DNA of 64,000 nucleotides from Epiperipatus broadwayi (GCA_028023455.1 JAQFVV010000003.1:11780001-11844000), one strand, 5' to 3'; positions 3,375 to 30,820 are shown, numbered from the stretch's first letter. The notes: generated by a model from the sequence alone, not told the origin. Made by a program: numbers and translations.

Positions 3375-6300
3375 TCATTCTTTATAACTTTGCTGTTTGT
3401 TTGAGCAGGGACCAAGTAGCTGCATAAATATCCAGGATGGTGATCTGCTTGTCTCTAACTTGAATTTTAATTTATTCTCAAATGTGGTTGGATGCCTTCT
3501 GGGGTTATTACCCAATATGAATGCACACCTAGTGCACCAAAGTGCATATAAGACAAACATTAAGGCCCTTATGGCTGGTACAGACCTACATTTGTAAGTT
3601 GACATAATTTGCATCATTATAGTGTTTTGCTTTCTATATTTCCCCTGCAGAATGCATCTAGTCTGCTCCATAGCCTTGCAGTTGAAAATTATGTGCTGTA
3701 AAGTCTCCTCAGTCATATGGCAAAGGCCACAGAATGGATCAACTGACCTGTACATTCTTCTGTGATGTAAAAAATATTTAGTAGGTAAAGCATTCAAATT
3801 CATTTTGATTATAAAATCTAGAAACTTAGGTTCTAGTTGCCATCTTTTGTATTGCTTGATCAGATATTTGTTTCCTATTTCTAGTATTGATGGGGATCTC
3901 CTTATACTTTCATTCAAATTGATGTTTCTAGTATTGATGGGATCTCCTTATACTTTCATTCAAATTGATCCGGGATTGTTTTTTCTCTCCTGCATTGGTA
4001 GATGGTGACTGCCAAAAAACAATCTTCTGGAGGATGCCTATCTGTAGGTGTTATCTGCTCTAAGTGTCTTAATTTAGGAAATTGAGTGAGTATAGCAATT
4101 ATAGCATTCCTTGTTTTGAATGTTTGAAATGTTTGTAAGCTATGCAACCCCAGTCCATTTGCTATAAGAGGGCGATTGAGTTTGACCATTGAAATTGCTA
4201 CCGTCTTTTTCCTCCAGATGAGCTTGCAACATATGGAATTAATACATGCCATAAATGTTTTTGAAAATTCAACTACAGGCATGTAATATGTTATCTTGGT
4301 TATTATAAGCTTGTTATTCAGTTCCACCTTTGCATATATGGACAAATATGCCTTTGAGAGTGATTCACCTATGCTCTTGACTTCTTCTTTGAGCTTGGCT
4401 TGGATCTGACATCACATACCAGTGGCTCCTAGAAAAAAAGGAAAGCCTAGAAATAGAATAGGTTTTTTTTGATACATTGGTCCATATGGCCTTCCAGTGA
4501 ATAGCATCCAGGCTGCAGTCTTTATTCGCATTCTGTATTGTTTTGAGAATTGTTCAAGCACTGCCTGAAGCTGTGGTATTTGCTTCTTGGATGTCAAGAA
4601 GACGTGATATCGTCCATGTATGTGAGACATGCAATCTTCTGTGTTGTTCCAGGTATTTGAACTCCAATGAATGTACTATTGATTTTTTCATTAAGTGGAT
4701 TGATATAATAAATAAACATTAATGCACTCACAGGAGACACCTGGGATAGTGATTGTGTTGGGATGAATGAGGGAGAATTTCTGCCATTCATAGTAACATA
4801 AAGTTCTCTGCTCAGTATCAAATTTGAAGTTAAATATAGCAGAGCTTTGGGTATTTTAGACTGCTTGAGCATATCCAGTAGCACAGGAATTCTCACTGAA
4901 TCGAAAGCTGAAGCAATATCTATCTGCACCACCACTGTGCTGTATTTCTTCCTCACCCTAGTGGCTATCATCATGGTCTTGAATAACAATGCTGCTTGCA
5001 CTGTTGATGATGTCTTCTTTGCAAATTGTGATTCACAGATGGTTGGTAAAATATAGGGCTCAATTTTATATTTTATAATCTTTTCCAATATTTTAATAGA
5101 AAGTGGCCCCATAGATATTGGTCTAAGCTCATTTGGCACTGATATGACTTTCTTTTTGTTATTATATGGCACTATTGCCATGGGGTATATCTCTGTGGTT
5201 GACTTAATTTCTTGAGCAAGATGGTTTGCTAAATTCTTGAGGTATATAGCTGTAAAAAAACTTAAATGCTTGAGAATGAACAGTGGTATCCCATGGCCAT
5301 CTGGGTGATAAGCATTGCTGATAGTTCTCATTTTCTCTATTATATCATTTTCACTAACTGGTAATTCACTCTCAATCTCTCCAAACATTTTTGGTGGGAA
5401 GAAAAAGCGAGGTGCAGCACTTAACTTATCTTGAAAGTATTTGAACAATGGCATGATCATGTTATGACCAGCAAACATACCATCCTCAGTCTGGATAGCC
5501 ATTGGCACCTTTAGGTCTGGTACATAACCTAAAGCCCACTTGATAAACTTGCAGTTCCAGGTGTGCTGTTGTGCCATGCAAAGCTTACTTTTCTTTATCT
5601 TCAGATATTTTTTCAGTGATTCACAGGCCTTGTTATAAGCATCAGTCAGCTTTCTTATGTGTATTTGGGATCTGTGTGTTGGAGCCATCACCATTAGTCT
5701 CTGATGTAGCTGATTAGCATATTGCAGAAACCTTGATGGTAGTGGTTGATTTATTGTTACATGATCAATATTGAAAGACAAGATGTTTATAAAAGTCAGG
5801 TATTGCTGTATAGAATCAAGGCTCATCCCTTTAACCTTCTGCAACAGAATATATGTCTCTGAGAAGAGGAATTCTGTTGCATTTGTTGGGATAAGTACTC
5901 TCATCATTTTTGTTAGCTTGTGATTAACTACTTGCAGTTTTTCTAGATTGATTGTGATTAACTGGGCAGAATGATCAGAAAACGTAGTCAGGACCAATTT
6001 TACTTCCATGAGGTGATGCAGTGATGGCAAGCAAAAGTTCAGATCCATTAATGTTGCCAACCAACCATTATGAAATGAGACAGCCCCTTTTGGCAGAAAA
6101 CCTTGTCCACTAATCAATGGTATGGCTATTTTATGTAGTGATTTCTGTATAAATTCTTCATAAGATGAGTTGCAGTCCCCAACCAGAACAGTGGGGCTTA
6201 AATTCATGGCAAGAATTGGAATTTATATTGGAAATTATAGATTCTATCTTTTGCTTTTGTACTGGCATATAAACAAGCACTATATTCATTGTAATTATTT

Positions 6301-8592: not shown

Positions 8593-8607
8593 TTAAATGA
8601 AATAAAT
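8593..8607 (+). repeat. left TSD of the PLE insertion (TTAAATGAAATAAAT)
   Basis: Identical 15-mer at 14892-14906. Excising the intervening DNA restores LINE ORF1 in frame (PKKLFISFK-RFFSNKSIV). Confidence 0.9.
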
Positions 8608-8670
8608 TAATATATATAAATGCGCTCTGCGCACAGTTAATGAAGCTATTAATAAATTGTCAAAATTTTT

Positions 8671-8719
8671 ACTGCCAAGCGCTTTCAGGACAGTCTACAG
8701 TCCCATATTCATGGCGAGT
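8671..8719 (-). ncRNA. candidate variant type-I hammerhead ribozyme in PLE pseudo-LTR (copy 1)
   Basis: ACUcGCC-AUGAAUA-U-GGGAC(uguagacu)GUCCU-GAA-AGCGCU-U-GGCAGU. One G-U wobble in stem II. Confidence 0.6.
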
Positions 8720-8775
8720 TATTCTGTTAATAACTGTAAAACTATGCAAATTTTATGCAAATTTATATGCAGATG

Positions 8776-11069
8776 TTACGTGGACCATTTACGAGATAGG
8801 GAATAGCAGGCCTCTCTTCTGTTGATTGCCGATGGGTCAGCCGCAATGAAGTAAGCTTCCCTAACTTTACGTTTGGTGTCGTTTGTTTCAGAGCAAACGA
8901 CACTGGCTGTGGTAGGTAGAAAAGCATGTCCAGAGTTTCTCTCGTGTTCGACAAAAATCGAATTACCTTCATACTTTGTTTTGGTTTTATTGTAAAGGTA
9001 TCGGTGTTGAGCTACTCTGGTGGCAATGTTAGTTTTGGTCTCTCCATAATATGTTGCCATGCAATTTCTTTGGGGGCAGGTAATTTTGTACACAACTTGA
9101 GGGGTGAGTTCAGGTTTGATCCTGTCTTTGGTATTATTTATCAGTCTATTGGTGTTGGGAGGTGAACGGAAAGTGACTTCAAAGTCACATGATAGTTGAT
9201 TGATAAGGCTTTTAGCTGTAGAGTGAACGTATGGGATTAAGATTCTTGGTTTGTTTTCTTTCTTGTGGTTGTGGTTTATTTTATAGAAAAATTTGTTGAC
9301 TTTTCTGTTGATGGATGAATAAGTGTGTCCTATTTTCCTTAAATCAGTTATATAATTGATGAGATTTTTTCTTTTATCTGCCTCATATTTGCACAAGTTA
9401 TGGTTCCTAAACATGAATGAGGAGAGGGCTGCAAGTTTGTGTGAGTGAGGCGCGTAAGAATTAGGGTTTGTCAAGCCTCTTACTTCCAAAGGTTTGACTA
9501 CCATTTGGTAGTCCAGCTTATCTATATTTTTGCTAACACATATGTCAAGGTATTTGACCTGTTTGTCTTGGTTTTCCCAAGTAGTAGTAAAAGTAAGCTT
9601 GGTATTATTATGGAGGCTATTGTGAAGGTTAGAGATGATGTCTTCTGGGGCAGCAACGAATATGTCATCAATGTAGCATGTATATATCATATGTGGGGTT
9701 GACATGAAGAGTACAGGTAGTATTAGCTTCTCGTAATGGTCAAGTACAACGCTTGCCATTATACCACTAAGTGGGAGGCCCATTGGCCATCCGTTGTTCA
9801 TACTAAACCACTTATCTCTGAAAACAGCAATTATATTTAAATCAAGCCATTTTAAAAAATCGATGATGAATTTGGCACGTGTAGGTGGGCAGTTTCTTGC
9901 AATTAATTTATCATTGACTATTTCGATAGATTGTTTACGGTCAATGGAGCCATATAGCTCTGCCACATCAAATGATGCGATTTTAAAATTAGCTGGTATA
10001 AACGCGTGTTTAATTTTTCCTACAAACATGAAAGATGATTTAATGGTGTAATCGCCAAAGCCTAATATATCAATAAGCCAGCGATTGACCAAAACTGCCG
10101 TGTTGAAATAGTGTGCCCTGCCAAAATCAATCATAAGTCTCAAAGGTTTATCAGGCTTGTGCAGCTTAATGTTAGCGAAGATTCTAGGAGGAGAAGAGGT
10201 TGACGGGTATATACGATGGTATTCGGCTTTTGTAAAGACGCTGTCACGATTTATTCGTAGTATATTGGATATAAATCTATCTCTGTTAAGCCTATTGTTG
10301 AAATTATTTAGATTTACAAATTTTAATTTTTCGATTTGTGTATTAATCTTAATATTATATTCATCATCATCTATCAATACAAATCTGTTCCCCTTGTCTT
10401 CTTTTAAGCAAATGATGGAATTATCCGCTAGAAATTGATTTGTGTTAGCTGCTTATTCTTGCAATCATTAGGATAATTGTTTAGCTGCTTATTCTTGATA
10501 GTTTTTGCTATCCTTGCGATAATTGGTTCCTTTAGTGGGTTGTCCATTAAAGCTGTTTCGACGTCAGCAACAATTTCCATTTTGGGATTCTTCCAGCGTC
10601 TGCCTATGAATTTTGGACCTAATTCAAAAACTTCCTTAATCGTGTGCGGAATGTTTGTGTTTGTAAGGTTGACAAACTTGTTGCTATTGAGCGCATCAAA
10701 TTGAATATTTTGCTTTTTTGCTAAAAATTTTATTTTATTATTGAATTTCTTGAACAGACCGTTCGTATGTCTATTGCATCTGTCGGTGATAAATGGGGGG
10801 ATCAGGTAGTTGTCGGAAATTATGTTCCATCTTCTCGTTTCTTTTTTTAAGGCCCTTTTGCATCCTTTAATGATAGAAATTAGTAGTTGTTTTTGTAAAT
10901 TCGTTTTGATTCTATCGTAATTATATACAGTCTTGTTAATAATAATTTTGCAGCAGTTAGGTACAATTTTACACTGATAACATTTTGTAAAGAAATATAT
11001 TCTCTGCTGAAATGTGCAAATTGACAGTCCAGTATGAAGTAGCTGCCGGTCTCGTGCGTAGTTATTCAT
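8776..11069 (-). pseudogene. PLE ORF (RT + C-terminal GIY-YIG endonuclease), ~764 codons, one frameshift near 10440
   Basis: RT motifs KLHKPDKPLR, SFDVAELY, GWPMGLPLS, YIDD, YLD. Endonuclease VVYKITC..C..YYGET..RVAQH..REAYFI. N-terminus in ORF 10428-11069. Confidence 0.92.
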
Positions 11070-11179
11070 GTTATTGAAATAGTTAAGATTTTACTTCATT
11101 AACGCTTAAATAAATTAATATATATATATGTGCTCTGCGCACAGTTAATGAAGCTATTAATAAATTGTCAAAATTTTTT

Positions 11180-11228
11180 ACTGCCAAGCGCTTTCGGGAC
11201 AGTCTACAGTCCCATATTCATGGCGAGT
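11180..11228 (-). ncRNA. candidate variant type-I hammerhead ribozyme in PLE pseudo-LTR (copy 2)
   Basis: Same fold with perfect GGGAC/GUCCC stem II. Predicted cut at 11186/11185, ~116 nt upstream of the ORF ATG at 11069. Confidence 0.65.
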
Positions 11229-11284
11229 TATTCTGTTAATAACTGTAAAACTATGCAAATTTTATGCAAATTTATATGCAGATG

Positions 11285-12735
11285 TTACGTGGACCATTTA
11301 CGAGATAGGGAATAGCAGGCCTCTCTTCTGTTGATTGCCGATGGGTCAGCCGCAATGAAGTAAGCTTCCCTAACTTTACGTTTGGTGTCGTTTGTTTCAG
11401 AGCAAACGACACTGGCTGTGGTAGGTAGAAAAGCATGTCCAGAGTTTCTTTCGTGTTCGACAAAAATCGAATTACCTTCATACTTTGTTTTGGTTTTATT
11501 GTAAAGGTATCGGTGTTGAGCTACTCTGGTGGCAATGTTAGTTTTGGTCTCTCCATAATATGTTGCCATGCAATTTCTTTGGGGGCAGGTAATTTTGTAC
11601 ACAACTTGAGGGGTGAGTTCAGGTTTGATCCTGTCTTTGGTATTATTTATCAGTCTATTGGTGTTGGGAGGTGAACGGAAAGCGACTTCAAAGTCACATG
11701 ATAGTTGATTGATAAGGCTTTTAGCTGTAGAGTGAACGTATGGGATTAAGATTCTTGGTTTGTTTTCTTTCTTGTGGTTGTGGTTTATTTTATAGAAAAA
11801 TTTGTTGACTTTTCTGTTGATGGATGAATAAGTGTGTCCAATTTTCCTTAAATCAGTTATATAATTGATGAGATTTTTTCTTTTATCTGCCTCATATTTG
11901 CACAAGTTATGGTTCCTAAACATGAATGAGGAGAGGGCTGCAAGTTTGTGTGAGTGAGGCACGTAAGAATTGGGGTTTGTCAAGCCTCTTACTTCCAAAG
12001 GTTTGACTACCATTTGGTAGTCCAGCTTATCTATGTTTTTGCTAACACATATGTCAAGGTATTTGACCTGTTTGTCTTGGTTTTCCCAAGTAGTAGTAAA
12101 AGTAAGCTTGGTATTATTATGGAGGCTATTGTGAAGGTTAGAGATGATGTCTTCTGGGGCAGCAACGAATATGTCATCAATGTAGCACGTATATATCATA
12201 TGTGGGGTTGACATGAAGAGTGCAGGTAGTATTAGCTTCTCGTAATGGTCAAGTACAACGCTTGCCATTATACCACTAAGTGGGAGGCCCATCGGCCATC
12301 CGTTGTTCATACTAAACCACTTATCTCTGAAAACAGCAATTATATTTAAATCAAGCCATTTTAAAAAATCGATGATGAATTTGGCACGTGTAGGTGGGCA
12401 GTTTCTTGCAATTAATTTATCGTTGACTATTTCGATAGATTGTTTACGGTCAATGGAGCCATATAGCTCTGCCACATCAAATGATGCGATTTTAAAATTA
12501 GCTGGTATAAACGCGTGTTTAATTTTTCCTACAAACATGAAAGATGATTTAATGGTGTAATCGCCAAAGCCTAATATATCAATAAGCCAGCGATTGACCA
12601 AAACTGCCATGTTGAAATAGTGTGCCTTGCCAAAATCAATCATAAGTCGCAAAGGTTTATCAGGCTTGTGCAGCTTAATGTTAGTGAAGATTCTAGAAGG
12701 AGAAGAGGTTGACGGGTATATATGATGGTATTCGG
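11285..12735 (-). pseudogene. 5'-truncated second PLE ORF copy (RT + GIY-YIG)
   Basis: Near-identical to 8776-10226 at a 2509-bp offset. Homology ends at the inversion junction. Confidence 0.92.
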
Positions 12736-14686
12736 TTTTTAGCAAAAAAGCAAAATATTCAATTTGATGCGCTCAATAGCAACAAGTTTGTCAACCTTAC
12801 AAACTCAAACATTCCGCACACGATTAAGGAAGTTTTTGAATTAGGTCCAAAATTCATAGGTGGACGCTGGAAGAATCCCAAAATGGACATCGTTGCTGAC
12901 GTCAAAACAGCTTTAATGGACAACCCACTAAAGGAACCAATTATCGCATGGATAGCAAAAACTATCAAGAATAAGCAGCTAAACAATTATCCAAATGATT
13001 GGAACAAGAAAATTACTAACACAAATCAATTTCTAGCGGATAATTCCATCATTTGCTTAAAAGAAGACAAGGGGAACAGATTTGTATTGATAGATGATGA
13101 TGAATATAATATTAAGATTAATACACAAATCGAAAAATTAAAATTTGTAAATCTAAATAATTTTAACAATAGGCTTAACAGAAACAGATTTATATCCAAT
13201 ATAGTATGAATAAATCGTGACAGCGTCTTTACAAAAGCCAAATACCATCGTATATACCCATCAACCTCTTCTCCTCCTAGAATCTTCGCTAACATTAAGC
13301 TGCACAAGCCTGATAAACCTTTGAGACTTATGACTGATTTTGGCAAGGCACACTATTTCAACATGGCAGTTTTGGTCAATCGCTGGCTTATTGATATATT
13401 AGGCTTTGGCGATTACACCATTAAATCATCTTTCATGTTTGTAAGAAAAAATTAAACACGCGTTTATACCAGCTAATTTTAAAATCGCATCATTTGATGT
13501 GGCAGAGCTATATGGCTCCATTGACCGTAAACAATCTATCGAAATAGTCAACGATTAATTGCAAGAAACTGCCCACCTACATGTGCCAAATTCATCATCG
13601 ATTTTTTAAAATGGCTTGATTTAAATAATAATTGCTGTTTTTAGAGATAAGTGGTTTAGTATGAACAACGGATGGCCAATAGGCCTCCCACTTAGTGGTA
13701 TAATGGCAAGCGTTGTACTTGACCATTACGAGAAGCTAATACTACCTGTACTCTTCATGTCAACCCCACATATGATATATACATGCTACATTGATGACAT
13801 ATTCGTTGCTGCCCCAGAAGACATCATCTCTAACCTTCACAATAGCCTCCATAATAATACCAAACTTACTTTTACTACTACTTGGGAAAACCAAGACAAA
13901 CAGGTCAAATACCTTGACATATGTGTTAGCAAAAACATAGATAAGCTGGACTACCAAATGGTAGTCAAACCTTTGGAAGTAAGAGGCTTGACAAACCCCA
14001 ATTCTTATGCGCCTCACTCACACAAACTTGCAGCCCTCTTCTCATTCATGTTTAGGAACCATAACTTGTGCAAATATGAGGCAGATAAAAGAAAAAATCT
14101 CATCAATTATATAACTGATTTAAGGAAAATTGGACACACTTATTCATCCATCAACAGAAAAGTCAACAAATTTTTCTATAAAATAAACCACAACCACAAG
14201 AAAGAAAACAAACCAAGAATCTTAATCCCATACGTTCACTCTACAGCTAAAAGCCTTATCAATCAACTATCATGTGACTTTGAAGTCGCTTTCCGTTCAC
14301 CTCCCAACACCAATAGATTGATAAATAATACCAAAGACAGGATCAAACCTGAACTCACCCCTCAAGTTGTGTACAAAATTACCTGCCCCCAAAGAAATTG
14401 CATGGCAACATATTATGGAGAGACCAAAACTAACATTGCCACCAGAGTAGCTCAACACCGATACCTTTACAATAAAACCAAAACAAAGTATGAAGGTAAT
14501 TCGATTTTTGTCGAACACGAAAGAAACTCTGGACATGCTTTTCTACCTACCACAGCCAATGTGGTTTGCTCTGAAACAAACGACACCAAACGTAAAGTTA
14601 GGGAAGCTTACTTCATTGTGGCTGACCCATCGGCAATCAACAGAAGAGAGGCCTGCTATTCCCTATCTCGTAAATGGTCCACGTAA
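12736..14686 (+). pseudogene. inverted PLE ORF copy (RT + GIY-YIG) with stop and frameshifts
   Basis: ORFs 12709-13209 and 13661-14686 match the minus-strand protein. Premature TGA at 13207-13209 and indels near 13445 and 13555. Confidence 0.92.
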
Positions 14687-14742
14687 CATCTGCATATAAA
14701 TTTGCATAAAATTTGCATAGTTTTACAGTTATTAACAGAATA

Positions 14743-14791
14743 ACTCGCCATGAATATGGGACTGTAGACTGTCCCGAAAGCGCTTGGCAGT
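14743..14791 (+). ncRNA. candidate variant type-I hammerhead ribozyme in PLE pseudo-LTR (copy 3)
   Basis: ACUcGCC AUGAAUA U GGGAC uguagacu GUCCC GAA AGCGCU U GGCAGU, ~57 nt after the ORF stop. Confidence 0.65.
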
Positions 14792-14891
14792 AAAAATTTT
14801 GACAATTTATTAATAGCTTCATTAACTGTGCGCAGAGCACATATATTTATATTAATTTATTTAAGCATTAATGAAGTAAAATCTTAACTAT

Positions 14892-15190
14892 TTAAATGAA
14901 ATAAATAACTTTTTCGGTATGGTCTCATTATATCTGCGATTTATCTCTCCCACTTCTTCTTTTAACCAAACGTTTTGCAAAGGCACATCGGCATCATATT
15001 CATCCATATTTATATCATTCACTTCATTCAGATCACCCTGATTGGCCCTTCTAAATCTTGGGATTTGTTTTGTATTTTGCAAATTTAATTCAGCTATGTT
15101 CGCATATGTTGTCTGTGCTCTAATATTGCTATATATTCGTGAAGTCTGATTCACACCAAACTTTATCTTGGATTCTGATGTGGATGCCAT
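14892..15190 (-). pseudogene. LINE ORF1 N-terminus (includes the right TSD 14892-14906)
   Basis: MASTSESK...TTYANIA...PKKLFISFK joins in frame to 8592 after removing the PLE. Confidence 0.85.
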
Positions 15191-15471: not shown

Positions 15472-16403
15472 TGAAATCTGGTGGTCAAGATGGACATTTA
15501 TTAAAAATAAGTTAACAGTAAACATTTTCTCAAAGTAACTGCTTTAGGTTTACTAAAGAATTTAAAATCACAAATTAAAAGAAAAATTAAATTATAAGGT
15601 GCAAATAAAAATAATGTTGTCTTCTGCATGAGAATCAGACTAAGTTTAACAGAATATCAAAAGTCAGAATTTCTAACTAAAAATGTTTCATTAAAATCTC
15701 TTAAAGCAAAATTGATTTTTTTTCCATTAGAAAAATCAATAGATTGTACTCAAAAAATTTAGGTAAATTAAAACTGTAACTACTACTAAATCTTATTAAT
15801 AATTATTAATTAAAATCCAATTACTTTGTACTAATAGTGTTAAATATTTTTACTACCAGCTTATCTGCTAATAAGAAAATACACTTCAATAAAATTAAAA
15901 AGTAAAAGTCATTACAGAATGAACAAATTAAAAATGCAAAAGTCAATTTTATTATATATATATATAAATAAATAATAATTAATAATATAATGATTTATAT
16001 AAATGCAATATTGTGGAAAGAAACTACTCTTTACAGCTGTGCTGGGAAATTTAAGGGATTATCAATTTTCTAGACATGTTTGAACAGTTGTTTGAAGAGT
16101 AGTTTCCTTCTATGATATTACATATAGAAAAAATAGTAAAATAGCATAGGTATATATGACAACATTCCTTACCTTGTGTGATAATGGTGTAATGAAAATT
16201 AAATTACAGAAATATTATTCATTATTGGATCATCTCTATTCTACTGAATGACTAATAAAAATTATTATTATACTTTCAATAAATGATTTGGGTTAAAGTT
16301 GTGAGGACTGTACATTTGACCCTTATCAATTAAACTGTTGTAATTTGCTATCTTACTATATAGTGAATAATGATAAAGATATGTGTAAGAAATTGTGATC
16401 TGT

Positions 16404-16447
16404 ACCAACTGATGAGTGCTGGCTTAGCATGAAATATGCAGTTTGGG
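16404..16447 (+). ncRNA. degenerate family B hammerhead within a ~130-bp family B fragment (~16360-16490)
   Basis: ACCAA CUGAUGA GUGCU(ggcuu)AGCAU GAA AUAUGCAG U UUGGG. Stem III is decayed. Flanks match 34726-34790 and 37571 onward. Confidence 0.6.
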
Positions 16448-19096
16448 GATCATAGATCTTTTTCACATGTCTTTGATCATATGTTTATGATTACATCCCT
16501 CCATAAAGTATTAAAAGTGGATAGAAAACATTCCATATCTTGTGTGAGGGTGGCATAATAAAAAATAAACTAAAGAAATATTATTAATTATTGGATAATC
16601 TCTTGTTTAATGAGTGACTAATAAAAATTACTAATTTAATTTAATTTGTTCTTGTAAATTCATTATCCTGCTCCATATGAATAAATAAAGAGAAATATGG
16701 CAAACATATGCAGTAACATTCTTACAACCAACATCATAATTATTGTATATTTTCTACAGATTATGATATATATATTAGCAAAGAAAAAAAGATGAAATAA
16801 TTGTACTCATAAAAATTAGAAATCTAAAATAAATAACATGGCAATCAGTACTAGCTATCAATACAAAATGTTATAGCAGATTGATTGTAAAATGTAAAAG
16901 AAAATACCCATACATGATACATTATGTGATGAATTTTCAAGGATAGAGAGATAATAATCCAGTGACTACTATTGTTTTCATTGTAGCAGAAATCTTAAAA
17001 ATAAATTTGTCAAATAACTGGAAAAAAGGAATAGCAGTTCATTATTAAGGTATACATATGTTTCATGACTTGATAAAATAGTAAACATATGTAATAGTGG
17101 GCAATGTAATAAGTACTATAAATAAAAGATTTGTTCTTCCCTTTTTATTGTTTCCTAAGATGCTGAATTTATGACATTCTCTAAATTTACATAAATATAT
17201 TAAAATTTTTAAATCTAAAATAATGATTACAACTATATAGATGAGATGAAGATTTTGACAAAAAAAATTTTAACATGAATGTGGACTACTTTAATAATAT
17301 GTTCTTAATATCTGCATAAACAAGAACCACCTCAAACAATAAAAATATATAATATTACAGTTAGCAGATATAGACATTAAGTTATCTATCAAAGTCAAGT
17401 TTACAATATAATATAGGTAGAATTGATTTCAAACTCATTTTCAAATAAGGAAAAATCTGGTAAATAATCAAAACCTATATTAAATAACTTAAATATCTTT
17501 TGAAAGAGAAAATTATTTAAAATCAGATCTCAAATCTTTTGCATTTGTGATATCATTTTGATCATATGAAACTTTTTGAAATCATCCTCACTTAATTATA
17601 AAAGAAATAAACATGAAAACTATGCATAATTACTCTTTAATCATAATCTAGCATAGAAACAAATATAGTCAATGCAAATTTTAATTAAAAGCTGTATTTA
17701 TAATGTCAAAATAATTGAAACTGTAGCTTAATATTTTGTCAATGATGATCATAAAACAATTCCAATGACCTTAACACACATAGTATTTTTTTTGAATTGT
17801 AATTAATGTTGAAAATGTCATTTTTTTTATAAAATGATAAAGTATATGTCATTGTTAATCAGTAATTGAAATTCAGTTTAACTTGAAACTAAAAGTATTC
17901 ATTGTTTGTTTTTTTAAACTCTAGTTTGAGATTTAAATCACATAAAAGCTCTAAAAAGTTCCCAAAATTTCAAAGAGAGATGTTTTTTTTTTAATTCAAT
18001 CTAATTAATTATTATCCGATATTTATAGAAAATATTCATGAGAATGATTATGCAAAGATAATGAATGATCTGTTAATCAAATTTAAATTTTCAACAATAA
18101 AATCAACTATATATAAAACATTTCAACTGTCATTTTTCATTATATATTCTATATGCTCAATCTTATCATAAATTCTTGAATTTTAAATTCCAGAATAAAA
18201 ATATTCATGATATATATCCTTGCAGAAACATATTGAGTTTATTGAGTTTTTTTAATATATTTATTAACTAGTATAATTTACATATCCAATTTTCATTGTA
18301 AAAATAATCTGAAAAACTTTAATTATTTTCAGGCTTAGAAATTTATTGATTAATTTCTTAATGCTAATAGCCACCTTAAAGTTTTTTCCTTTGACAAATA
18401 CTGAATCCCTGCTACATTCAGTAATGGTTGTAAATTTCACTTACATAGATTTAAAAAAAGACATGACTTTTAATGAATTTAGTAACATTAAATTGTATTT
18501 TTTAGATCTATAAAAAAAAATGTTTAGCCACCAATGCAGAATTAATATTAATCTGAAATCCAATTTCTTTTTTCCCTATCATTATTGTTGCAGTTATTCC
18601 ATTGCAAATATACATCTTAAAGAATTCAATCACTTTTAGAAAAATATTTTCACTCATTATATCCCTATCTAATGACTGAGCAAAATAGAAGTTTTTATGA
18701 ACAGTATTATTGAAGCAATTAGTTTATGCCAAATTTGTAATATCAATCAATTCATCCAAATGGTTTATAATAAAATCATTAAATAAACATTTTAATTATT
18801 CTACACATATATCGATAAACACATAAAAGTATAAAACTTAATATGACATTCCAACTGTATGGTTTAACTCTATGAACCATATTTTTTTTCTTGTGAAATA
18901 ATTCTTGCTTTATTTTATAAGATAAATTACCTTTTTTTTTTTAATGGTTCAAATAAATAAATCTGAAACAAATGGAGTTGAGATTGAGAAGGATTATTTC
19001 TGCTCATACACTATTAAAAAAAAAGTTTGAGTAAATCAAACAAAATAATGTTTGAAACCAATAAGAGATTGGTCAAAATAATTAATTAGATGAAAT

Positions 19097-19163: not shown

Positions 19164-20820
19164 GTTTTAGATTAAACGTCTTTATACTATGTTATAAAAT
19201 CTTCATTTATATCAAAAACTATAAAAATTCTAGTAATAATTATATATTAAACTATTTCTATCTTCTAATATTAATATTAAATGCTTTTAGAAAAATTCAA
19301 ACTTTAAAAATATTGCTCAATATATAGTATATCATTTGAAATTCCTACTAACAACTGAAAAGTCATGTTTAATATGAAACAACTTTTATTCAGCTGATGA
19401 ATTATATTATTGTATCTATATATGCTGTACAGTTCTAATTACCATTCAGCACTCTTAAGCAAAAAAAAACACTTTATTTTAAATGTGCCATAATTGGTCA
19501 CATAATCTTGCAGTGTAATACTAGCACTTGTGTGGTACATAATAATATAGATAAAAATTATTAATTTTTCAGTAATGGCCTGCAACTCAAATCATGGCAA
19601 ATATTTTGCAGATTACCCTTAACTACCTATTTGAAAATGGAAATTTTCTAATAATCCTCAACTTTAGCCTAATGTAGAGTTGACAAGCAGATGAATGACA
19701 TATCTTCTAAACAAAATATTATTCTTTTATCATGTGGCATTCATAATTTTGATTTGAATTCTGTCAAATTATTCCCTTGCATCAATAAGTTAAAGCAAAA
19801 TCTAGATACATAACATTCTAATAATGATAAATTTCACAGTTGAAAACAAACATTAAGACATCTGATGCTATAATTCTTAATAAGACTTATCTAATGCATA
19901 ATAAATAACAAAAATAAAATGTCTGTTGCTAATCTTAGTGACAACCACATTAACAGAAAATGATTTTCAAAAGAACAATATTAATATGTAAATATTTTAT
20001 TTAAATATATTGTGGTTTCTTATTATATACCACTGCATTCTACTATTAACACATAGATTGAGGAACTGTTAAAAAACATATCAGGTCATGCATTTATTTA
20101 TTACTAATTACTCATGTATGATTTTGTAAAATCTTTAATTTTTCTTTATCAGCAATATTTCTTACAACTTTGCATTCACTATTTTTTAACTTTACTGAAA
20201 TTTAAAGTTTTATTTATTTATTTTTAGACTGTATGTCTAAGGGTTAACCATTTCAAATATTTATTCCCTGGTGTACATTTGTATATATAGATTATTTAAT
20301 TCAAGATTTTAAATTTGAAATATGAGCAGGAGTATCCAAGCACATGTACAATACATAATATATATGTGGCTCACACATTCACCAACAAAAATATTTTTAA
20401 AAAATGTATATAAGTAATAAAAAATTAAAAAATTCATCTTTTGAAATGAAATCTGTATTTGAAAATGTACACATTTATTCAATTCTGAATAATAGACTAA
20501 TTATCAAAAATCAAAGAAATCAATTATTTCAGATTTACTATCAAAGAGGCTACTTTTGATACTGAAACTAGCATTATGAAAATTTAAAAATATGTATGTA
20601 GAACAATTAAAAAAATGGATATATTTATTTATGCTATAAATCAATGAATCTCAAAAAAAATTATTTAATGGTCATCGTATTAATAAAAACCAACACTTCT
20701 GTTATTATTTAGCAGTGATAATATTATTAATACATACAATTAAAATAATTACCCAGCACTTTCAACACTAATGTGTCTTTATCAAGGCAAACTCTGTAAA
20801 ACATGGACTCTTTCCACACT

Positions 20821-21255
20821 TTAAAAAAAAAAAAAACACTTTAACAACCGGACATTACTAATCAGAAAACTAGTTTGTTTGGCATTAATTGCATCCTGGG
20901 ATTTCTTAATTAAATACGATTCCATAATCATTTGTTTCTGATCATGTGGCTCATACATCAATATATTAAACTTTTGTGGAATAAAACTATGACTAGTTGC
21001 ACATTGATGAATATAAAATACTGAATATACCATATTATCTTCTACCACTTTTTTATATGAATAATTATGCTGTTGCAAACAACATTTCATATTCATCCTC
21101 TTTTCACCAATATAAATAGTACAACATCCTGGAACTTGGAAAACAATAGAATATATCATTTGACATTTATCACTATCAGCTGTTTTACTTTTAGTATTGT
21201 TTAATTTCCTATTAAGAGGTGGTGTATGCCAAGTTATTCTATAATCATTACTCAT
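20821..21255 (-). pseudogene. decayed PLE GIY-YIG endonuclease (different PLE lineage)
   Basis: MIYSI..PGCCTIYIGEK..LQQH..HQCATSHSF..ESYLIK..AIN aligns motif by motif with the C-terminus of the 8776-10377 protein. Confidence 0.75.
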
Positions 21256-28620: not shown

Positions 28621-29366
28621 TAATGTGAAAAAAGGAAGTTATGTATCAGAGAAACTATACTAAATTTGTAAAACTCATCTTAATATTAATATCATGTATA
28701 TTCTTTATTACTTTTAGAACTCATCTTCTAATATAATGATAAAGACAGAAAAGAAAAAATGTGATTAGTGATCCAAAAAAAAAGAACTATGCAGAAATAC
28801 TGGAAATATTGAGCAAAAGGTTTAGGCTTAGACAACATAACTAATAATGATAATGATGTTGATATGATTATATTTTGAAAAAACATTTTTGAAAAATGCA
28901 ATCTTAAGCTTATACATATATTTTTTCCTAAATATAGATTCCACAGTAATCTGAGTAACAAAGTATTTCAATTAATCCAGTAGATATACTTAATCATCAG
29001 TATTGATAGTTTAATAATGCTTATCAAGAACTTAAAGATAAATTAATCTAAATACACTCTAACAGGGTTTATTTTATGCTGTAGTTTTAAACATGGTACA
29101 ATATTAAATATGAAATGCTAAAAAAAAAAGTTAAAATATTAACAAATTATTATCAATAATCATGCATTATCCTACTGCTTACACTCTTAAATATTATTTT
29201 TACATATAATTTCAAATTATTAAACATCACATGATTACCATCTCTATACTAGCACATAATTGTAAACAAAGGCAAAACTCTCCATACAGTAGTGCCAAAC
29301 AGAGTAATCAATGGATGCCAGAAGGCTTGTGCATAAAATCCCTATCTAGTGCCTACTCATCCAATA

Positions 29367-29408
29367 TCCCCAGACTAGTTTCTGGCTTGTGGCCATCATC
29401 AGTGAGGA
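29367..29408 (-). ncRNA. family A minimal type-I hammerhead ribozyme (best copy)
   Basis: UCCUCA CUGAUGA UGGC(cacaa)GCCA GAA ACUAGU C UGGGGA. Canonical core, GUC site, palindromic stem III. Confidence 0.85.
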
Positions 29409-29819
29409 GCCTTGAATCAGAACACTGCACCTACATCTTAGGATCTAATTCAACCATCCAGCAGCCACCTTGTAACTCTACTTTACTATAAAACTATGAG
29501 GATGAAATTGAAAACACAATAATATTTTCAATCTAAGCTCAATAGCTTATATAGTCATATGGGTCTGAACTCAATTTAGCACCCATACATTTTGGTCTCT
29601 TTGGCTCTTAAACAACCATATCCACCACTATCCTATTAGGCAGGATTGGTGTTAAATCACTAAACATCACATGATCACCATATCTATACTAGCACATAAT
29701 TGTTGTAAACAAAGGCAAAACTCTCCATACAGTAGTGCCATCCTGTGCCAAAAAGAGTAATCAATGGATGCCAGAAGGCTTGTGCATAAAATCCCTATCT
29801 AGTGCCTACTCATCCAATA

Positions 29820-29859
29820 TCCCGACTAGTTTCTGGCTTGTGGCCATCATCAGTGAGGA
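29820..29859 (-). ncRNA. family A hammerhead, 2-nt deletion in the stem I 3' strand
   Basis: Core and stems II/III intact. GUC is followed by GGGA instead of UGGGGA. Confidence 0.65.
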
Positions 29860-30275
29860 ACCTTGGATATGAGAGCACTGCACCTAGATCTTAGGATCTA
29901 ATGCAACCCTCCAGCAGCCACCTTTTAACTTTACTTTACTACAAAACTATGAGAATGAAATTGAAAATACAATATTTTTTTATCTAAGCTCAATAGCTTA
30001 TATAGTCATATGGGTCTGAACTCAATTCAGCACCAATACATTTTGGTGTCTTTGGCTCTTAAACAACCATAGCATAGCCACCACTATCCTATTAGGCAGG
30101 ATTGGTGTTAAACCACTAAACATCACATTATCACCATCTCTATACTAGCACATAATTGTTGTAAACAAAGGCAAAACTCTCCATACAGTAGTGCCACCCT
30201 GTGCCAAACAGAGTAATCAATGGATGCCAGAAGGCTTGTGCATAAAATCCCTATCTAGTGCCTACTCATCCAATA

Positions 30276-30317
30276 TCCCAAGACTAGTTTCTGGCTTGTG
30301 GCCATCATCAGTGAGGA
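30276..30317 (-). ncRNA. family A hammerhead, one stem I mismatch
   Basis: Core intact. Extended stem I AUCCAA/UUGGAU beyond a GGC/UA internal loop. Confidence 0.75.
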
Positions 30318-30820
30318 GCCTTGGATCTGAGAACACTGCACCTAGATCTTAGGATCTAATGCAACCCTCCAGCAGCCACCTTTTAACTCTACTTTACTAC
30401 AAAACTATGAGAATGAAATTTTAAAAACACAATAATATTTTCAATCTAAGCTCAATAGCTTATATAGTCATATGGGTCCGAACTCAATTCAGCATGCTAC
30501 TGTATGGAGAGTTTTGCCTTTGTTTACAACAATTATGTGCTAGTATAGAGATGGTGATCATGTGATGTTTAGTGGTTTAACACCAATCCTGCCTAATAGG
30601 ATAGTAGTGGCTATGGTTGTTTAAGAGCCAAAGACACCAAAATGTATGGGTGCTGAATTGAGTTCAGACCCATTTGACTATATAAGCTATTGAGCTTAGA
30701 TTGAAAATATTATTGTGTTTTCAATTTCATTCTCATAGTTTTATAGTAGAGTTAAACGGTGGCTGTTGGAGGGTTGCATTAGATCCTAAGATCTGGGTGC
30801 AGTGCTCTCAAATCCAAGGC

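Follow-up and report, generated by a model that had tools for sequence, protein, structure and literature searches.

The 64,000-nt stretch of the Epiperipatus broadwayi genome that we analysed (GCA_028023455.1 JAQFVV010000003.1:11780001-11844000, hereafter the window; genome size 5.6 Gb) contains three copies of a hammerhead motif, carried by a Penelope-like element (PLE), in which the C3-G8 pair of the canonical core is replaced by A3-U8. The motif is supported as a homologue of the minimal, dimer-type hammerhead of PLE pseudo-long terminal repeats (pseudo-LTRs), and it is very probably a selected motif derived from a hammerhead. The A3-U8 PLE hammerhead is a conserved new natural variant of a known ribozyme class, the catalysis of which is a prediction. 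Judging from sequence features, we consider it rather probable that the three motifs are minimal dimer-type PLE hammerheads of a lineage that replaced C3-G8 by A3-U8 and would be able to cut.

The copies are 49 nt long each, and are located where the initial annotation had placed them:

8671-8719, minus strand: hammerhead copy 1, A3-U8 core; U17 at 8677; C-to-U change at 11.1 (position 8687).
11180-11228, minus strand: hammerhead copy 2, perfect; U17 at 11186; internal to the tandem arm of the element.
14743-14791, plus strand: hammerhead copy 3, perfect; U17 at 14785.

A search of the window with a 36-nt pattern returned exactly these three copies, where no match was expected by chance (100 shuffles). 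Copies 2 and 3 are identical to each other and have the sequence originally given for all three, reading ACUCGCC / AUGAAUA / U / GGGAC-8 nt-GUCCC / GAA / AGCGCU / U / GGCAGU, whereas copy 1 deviates from it in stem II, in that GUCCU replaces GUCCC and the 10.1-11.1 pair becomes G-U. This change at position 8687 is private to copy 1, because contigs from four sequencing runs read C there. The cuts are predicted at 8677/8676 and 11186/11185 on the minus strand and at 14785/14786 on the plus strand. The two minus-strand motifs are spaced 2509 nt apart, and the motif follows the stop codon of the endonuclease, encoded by the reverse transcriptase (RT)/GIY-YIG gene, at a distance of 57 nt.

The minimal PLE hammerhead has been described as having a nucleotide between A9 and 10.1, a G10.1-C11.1 pair, a palindromic 15.2-16.2 segment and a dimeric mode of action (PMC4209133). 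In the window, the extra nucleotide after A9 is U in all three copies, 10.1-11.1 is G-C in copies 2 and 3, position 17 is U, directly after U16.1, in all copies, and the palindrome AGCGCU is self-complementary. That is, the extra U, which had been listed among the non-canonical traits, corresponds to a published, conserved feature of PLE hammerheads (PMC4209133). The conserved core positions U4 G5 A6, A9, G12 A13 A14, A15.1-U16.1 and H17 are intact in the three copies, and the conserved positions other than 3 and 8 are also present in every family compared. The core reads AUGAAUA and does not fit the CUGANGA consensus (C3, G8), so that a CUGANGA search would indeed miss the motif, as had been anticipated. 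Alternative registers of the core, in which the C of stem I would serve as C3 or the extra U would pair with A3, were rejected because none of them restores G8-A9 beside stem II. As a monomer, copy 2 is predicted to form stems I and II (-16.7 kcal/mol, z = -2.6). The RNAcofold homodimer reaches -40.3 vs 2 x -16.7 kcal/mol, with an intermolecular helix III made of AGCGCU and with stem I formed in trans; this is a double-hammerhead topology, in agreement with the palindrome-based dimer that had been proposed. CUGANGA cores are found in the pseudo-LTRs of the nearest relatives from other species (one tick genome, two Logan assemblies; 25-30% identity), and there too an extra nucleotide and a palindromic helix III are present. 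Taken with the covariation among families described below, these class features bear out the original assignment to PLE pseudo-LTR hammerheads with A3-U8 in place of C3-G8.

Genome-wide, the window family comprises 1075 perfect copies of the motif, and 4031 copies when up to three mismatches are allowed (control pattern, 0). Of the 1095 copies that are otherwise perfect at the fixed positions, 1075 have A3 and U8; the remainder have a single change, at position 3 (17 copies) or at position 8 (three copies). These rare single changes therefore represent neutral decay around a fixed A3-U8. A canonical-core sub-lineage within the window family was considered and rejected, given that no copy is changed at both positions. 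Searches of the whole genome for motifs with an AGCGCU helix III gave the following counts:

A3-U8, N7 not A: 9540 exact copies in other families (control, 3), with at least 12 different complementary stem II sequences.
U3-A8: 1838 copies (control, 31), including a remnant in the window with an endonuclease relic (30% identical).
C3-G8: 593 copies (control, 1), with endonuclease remnants upstream.
G3-C8: 34 copies, 21 of them from one family (control, 2).

A3-U8 is the majority core in the genome, with about 10,600 exact copies distributed over many families. The G3-C8 family (loci L090-L094) is small, with 21 exact copies and the core GUGAACA U GGGA.., and it is sister to the window A3-U8 family in the tree of the endonuclease domain (support 96/96; 58-62% amino-acid identity), which implies a compensatory A-U to G-C double transition at positions 3 and 8. 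The occurrence of A-U, U-A, C-G and G-C families, together with this sister relationship, argues for selection on the 3-8 pair.

Further evidence was obtained from 44 distinct, unfiltered A3-U8 motifs, in which the extra nucleotide, position 17 and the pairing of the stems lie outside the search pattern. All 44 have U as the extra nucleotide, and position 17 is A (18 motifs), C (13) or U (13) but never G. Stem II is 91% paired in these motifs, vs 71 +/- 2% when the partners are shuffled (maximum 77% in 1000 shuffles), and shows two to four pair types per position. In stem I, across A3-U8 motifs and families, 2.1-1.1 is U-A, C-G or G-C, and within the 44 motifs 2.4-1.4 is A-U in 16 and G-C in 12. 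Subfamilies of the window family have kept the 27 fixed nucleotides and are 54-67% identical in the flanks, with compensatory changes in stem I (CGCC/GGCG and CACC/GGUG). Copies within one family are not independent of each other. A MAFFT alignment of three families gapped the core, and pairs were counted from a structure-anchored parse instead. Comparison among the PLE families of this genome shows the motif, at the sequence level, to be under purifying selection, with the helices and the 3-8 pair covarying. Covariation of stems I and II and of the 3-8 pair was thus found across the PLE families of this genome, while covariation at 3-8 is not new as such, since U3-A8 has already been published for PLEs and other hammerheads (PMC4209133, PMC3088659).

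All three motifs are part of a single insertion of about 6.3 kb (8608-14892), with the following components (ORF, open reading frame):

8594-8607: left target-site duplication, TAAATGAAATAAAT; the 14-mer recurs at 14893-14906.
8608-8670, minus strand: 3' terminal region of the minus arm, short-end type, with a conserved block and (AT)n-TTAAT preceding the end, which lies 69 nt beyond the predicted cut.
8776-10377, minus strand: C-terminal ORF piece, 533 amino acids, RT and GIY-YIG-type endonuclease.
10428-11069, minus strand: N-terminal ORF piece, 213 amino acids, in another frame than the 533-amino-acid piece.
11070-11179, minus strand: pseudo-LTR segment from hammerhead copy 2 to the ATG, with the two alternative sites of the 3' end ('tail') as well as the downstream unit's 5' leader.
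11285-12745, minus strand: upstream unit of the minus arm, 5'-truncated, with an RT/endonuclease ORF remnant of 486 amino acids.
12736-14892, plus strand: inverted, 5'-truncated arm with the long 'tail' end, 107 nt past the cut site; inverted repeats I1-I10.
14893-14906: right target-site duplication, TAAATGAAATAAAT, matching the left 14-mer.

The empty site was found in contigs of other samples, which pass from 8607 directly to the sequence beyond 14906. The minus arm (12745 to 8608) consists of 1.65 tandem units with two motifs, and is joined head-to-head to the inverted, 5'-truncated plus arm (12736 to 14892), which has one motif and whose junction and end were located by direct reading of the sequence. 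The upstream and downstream units of the minus arm are 98.6% identical over 1629 nt, and the plus arm is 97.8-98.5% identical to them, i.e. the three unit copies differ by 1.4-2.2%. As the 3' ends of the two arms lie 69 and 107 nt beyond the cut, a 38-nt tail is confined to one side. This organization matches the published PLE architecture, in which a partial tandem (pseudo-LTR) is accompanied by a neighbouring 5'-truncated copy in inverted orientation and, optionally, by a tail of 30-40 bp at one end (PMC8557442, PMC11167929). The three window copies are dead, because their ORFs are broken and they are 1.4-2.2% apart, and they were delivered as one complex insertion. A second conserved island occurs in the pseudo-LTR at 8608-8650, 11117-11160 and 14811-14862, consisting of AAUAGCUUCAUUA.CUGUGCGCAGAGCAC and then (AU)n-UUAAU; its identity among subfamilies is 87-91%, vs 54-58% for the spacer, and it is located exactly at the short 3' end. 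This island is probably the region of reverse-transcription start and protein recognition. Just to the left of the insertion, a 537-amino-acid ORF with a clear RVT_1 match (4594-6207, minus strand; E = 8e-18) belongs to a different retroelement.

The 533-amino-acid piece has a weak RVT_1 match (E = 2e-5, below the Pfam cut-off) and 4976 relatives detected by HMMER, of which the best are 25-30% identical; its last 134 residues can be aligned to relatives, and this alignment shows little or no variation in the endonuclease motifs Y..C..C..YxG..R..H..H..H..E..E..N. The top 15 structural matches to a model of the endonuclease domain (pLDDT, the predicted local distance difference test score, 81) are all GIY-YIG domains (UvrC, I-TevI, PD-T4-3), the matches being weak (best E = 0.07, probability up to 0.91). 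The Pfam GIY-YIG profile gave no match on the ORF, and neither did a search of PDB sequences with it. There were no close protein relatives at E <= 1e-10, and it was an exhaustive search that yielded the 25-30% identical ones. The element is an endonuclease-containing (EN+) PLE of the canonical type, with an RT followed by a C-terminal GIY-YIG domain that has a CCHH-type motif. The placement of the hammerhead behind an RT/GIY-YIG ORF is therefore confirmed by the ORF itself, the HMMER relatives, the alignment and the structural matches. The initial annotation had also proposed that cleavage of successive copies would release a 2509-nt monomer with the whole ORF. This holds for the spacing of the motifs but not for the ORF; the gene is broken in the 2509-nt unit, because the 213- and 533-amino-acid pieces occupy different frames. 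Near the split, at 10448-10455, the length of other copies deviates by 1 nt.

How might the A3-U8 motif work? In multimeric or read-through PLE transcripts, two motifs would pair via AGCGCU into an intermolecular helix III, with stem I formed in trans, and the resulting two active sites would cut after U17, probably slowly. The general base G12 and the general acid, the 2'-OH of residue 8, would both be retained with A3-U8, the latter because residue 8 contributes its ribose and not its base. Reverse transcription starts internally, at one site about 70 nt and another about 107 nt downstream of the cut, on an RNA that still spans the motif, and cleavage is not the step defining the integrated copy. 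Przybilski and Hammann reportedly found in 2007 that any Watson-Crick 3-8 pair is cleavage-competent, with a context-dependent preference for pyrimidine-3/purine-8. As regards A-U, this reported competence is in conflict with a scan from 2023 in which only G:C was tolerated. According to Perreault 2011 (PMC3088659), engineered 3-8 swaps are active in vitro.

A number of observations weigh against the reading of the A3-U8 motif as a hammerhead that cuts. In the scan just mentioned, a comprehensive pairwise mutagenesis performed on a type III hammerhead, activity was restored by the G3:C8 swap only and was low in the other core double mutants (Roberts 2023, PMC9901934). In an Anolis PLE, insertion in vitro did not depend on hammerhead cleavage, and RNA-seq showed no ends at the site (Frangieh 2024, PMC11167929). 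Among 30 independent genomic copies holding the motif that were examined for their ends, none has its end at the predicted cut. The end lies 64-77 nt past U17, behind the conserved block and (AT)n-TTAAT, in 15 of them and 106-114 nt past U17 in 13. In the whole genome, three copies start at G1.1, three stop at U17 and more than 1000 span the site, and all of the 3 + 3 copies bounded at the cut site are rearrangement or fold-back junctions. Furthermore, the tandem arm in the window contains an uncut internal motif. In the sequencing runs that contain the motif (Logan contig sets, about 100 Mb), depth is high at the 3' end and low at the 5' end, which looks like DNA of 5'-truncated copies and so provides no RNA ends. 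The invariance of the core in our samples arises partly by construction, because the search patterns fixed most core positions. Finally, the Rfam hammerhead models gave no match to the motif at the gathering score nor at E <= 10, a result of little weight that is uninformative because canonical-core PLE motifs were missed as well.

The two 3' ends, about 40 nt apart, are the PLE 'tail', which has been traced to two internal start sites of reverse transcription (Frangieh et al. 2024, PMC11167929). Because copies end past the cut site and the copied RNA spans the motif, the cut linear 2509-nt monomer is not the integration template, and the idea of such a monomer as the integrated form had to be abandoned, as genomic copies neither start nor end at the cut site. 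A separate observation on copy structure is that many very short fold-back double insertions of the window family exist (loci L001, L016/L017, L025, L028 and L074), truncated on the 5' side 37-51 nt before U17, inside the hammerhead or immediately upstream of it.

With these points taken into account, we lean, if not strongly, towards the A3-U8 core being able to cut at a biologically relevant rate, as predicted from its sequence. That A3-U8 could be a fully working natural core, prevailing over C3-G8 across the PLE radiation in more than 10,000 copies and many families, is a more tentative proposal, whose chances we would put somewhat below even. The alternative that deserves most attention, although we regard it as unlikely, is that the motif is a conserved descendant of a hammerhead with no or negligible cutting, kept as a folded landmark or dimerisation signal (AGCGCU) by the start of reverse transcription. 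It would fit with the inactivity of most 3-8 double mutants in deep mutagenesis (PMC9901934), the independence of PLE insertion from cleavage in vitro (PMC11167929), the lack of genomic ends at the cut site, the good proliferation of PLE clades without canonical hammerheads (PMC8557442) and the invariance of the palindrome through the A-U, U-A, C-G and G-C families. However, a role without cutting leaves unexplained why all eleven other catalytic nucleotides are kept at 25-60% protein identity and why G is avoided at position 17 (0/44), and the 3-8 pair switches solely between Watson-Crick pairs, including from A-U to G-C in a sister family.

Two other explanations are considerably less probable. 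One, to which we give only a small chance, is that both flanking motifs cut and that the 2509-nt monomer is circularised and used as template, so that rolling-circle reverse transcription would yield the partial tandems. In favour of this, insertions have fixed internal starting points, 64-77 or 106-114 nt past the cut, from which the motif is read through, the 1.65 units of the minus arm are what a circle would permit, and a rolling circle has been proposed for related retrozymes (bioRxiv 10.64898/2026.07.22.740005). The same structures would nevertheless result from read-through of tandem master copies without any cleavage, a head-to-tail junction is indistinguishable from genomic tandems, and, in vitro, PLE reverse transcription begins at internal positions of linear RNA (PMC11167929). 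The other is a chance resemblance in a repeated DNA family, without constraint at the RNA level, which we hold to be extremely improbable. It is true that the hammerhead core is short relative to a genome of this size, and that copy number alone is no proof because the copies of a family are near-identical through recent amplification. Reversed-pattern controls, however, gave 0-3 matches where the real patterns gave thousands, families with protein identities of 25-60% share the location of the motif behind the endonuclease gene, covariation is seen in both stems and at 3-8, and canonical counterparts exist in other species. Because of the covariation across families, chance is effectively refuted.

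Returning to the reading of the motif as a hammerhead that is predicted to cut, its closest known counterparts are the minimal PLE hammerheads (Cervera & de la Pena 2014, PMC4209133), with which it shares the location in the pseudo-LTR behind the RT/GIY-YIG ORF, a type-I-like topology without a helix III hairpin, a palindromic 15.x-16.x segment that requires a dimer, the extra nucleotide A9/10.1, the G10.1-C11.1 pair, a high copy number and many families per genome. It differs from them in having a purine at position 3 and a pyrimidine at position 8. Literature searches (hammerhead with A3-U8; C3A/G8U) gave no report of a natural A3-U8 hammerhead, Lunse 2017 being outside their coverage. U3-A8 hammerheads have been reported from the Cercyon PLE of Schistosoma mansoni (about 1300 matches; PMC4209133) and from several bacterial and other sources (Perreault 2011, PMC3088659). 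They likewise represent a natural Watson-Crick replacement of C3-G8, but U3-A8 keeps the pyrimidine-3/purine-8 order of C3-G8, which A3-U8 reverses. The U3-A8 state is found in the window as well. That is, 20745-20791 and 20821-21255 (both minus strand) form a 5'-truncated remnant of a different PLE family, in which 20821-21255 encodes a 144-amino-acid endonuclease relic, 30% identical to that of the window A3-U8 family (E = 5e-22), and 20745-20791, about 30 nt downstream of the relic, is a U3-A8 motif (UUGAUAA A GACAC..GUGUU GAA AGUGCU G). This motif is decayed, with a CpG change in the palindrome and G at position 17, and its family of about 1838 copies shows a compensatory change in stem II from GACAC/GUGUU to GACUC/GAGUU.

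Engineered 3-8 swaps, among which the work of Martick and Scott (2006) is said to belong, establish Watson-Crick pairing between positions 3 and 8, with an exchangeable identity of the pair, and differ from the natural variants in that they are laboratory mutants of hammerheads with an intact helix III or tertiary contacts. A further swap of this kind is C3G/G8C in the hammerhead of an Anolis PLE (Frangieh 2024, PMC11167929). As far as they are described in PMC4209133, the double hammerheads of avocado sunblotch viroid and newt satellite RNA (Forster et al. 1988) consist of two motifs that share an extended helix III, the topology also predicted by the cofold of the window motif; as portrayed there, their cores are canonical, their helix III is a short hairpin and they lie outside protein-coding retroelements.

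Non-long-terminal-repeat retrozymes have been proposed to be non-autonomous derivatives of PLE pseudo-LTRs (PMC7229834, bioRxiv 10.64898/2026.07.22.740005). In contrast to the PLE of the window they are non-coding and have canonical C3-G8, without an extra nucleotide in the window copy. This copy is a 456-nt tandem repeat at 29221-30494 (minus strand; 2.8 copies, 92% matches), whose units each contain a minus-strand hammerhead that is minimal and canonical, CUGAUGA UGGC..GCCA GAA ACUAGU C, with no extra nucleotide and with cores at 29402, 29853 and 30311; it looks like a non-coding repeat of the retrozyme type. A further canonical-core candidate, CUGAUGA GUGCUG..UAGCAU GAA A UAUGCAG U U, is located at 16409-16445 (plus strand) within repeats 16158-16276 / 16524-16642 (366-nt spacing), and may be due to chance.

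Until now, natural covariation at 3-8 had been seen only as C-G to U-A. In E. broadwayi, A-U (the dominant state), U-A, C-G and G-C occur at the homologous place in related retroelements of one genome, with a change from A-U to G-C between sister families. These four pair states offer a clean natural test of the 3-8 pair and of residue 8 acting via its ribose. The prevalence of A3-U8 conflicts with the deep mutagenesis in which only the G:C swap survived, and the activity of A3-U8 RNA would show how far tolerance of the core depends on context, i.e. on the dimeric minimal fold and the extra U. That copies never begin or end at the cut site bears on what hammerheads do for PLEs. Furthermore, because CUGANGA and Rfam descriptors miss A3-U8 motifs, censuses of PLE hammerheads may be badly incomplete. 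If A3-U8 does work, CUGANGA-based censuses would, in at least some lineages of animals, have missed the majority of PLE hammerheads, and claims of PLE clades without hammerheads could be affected.

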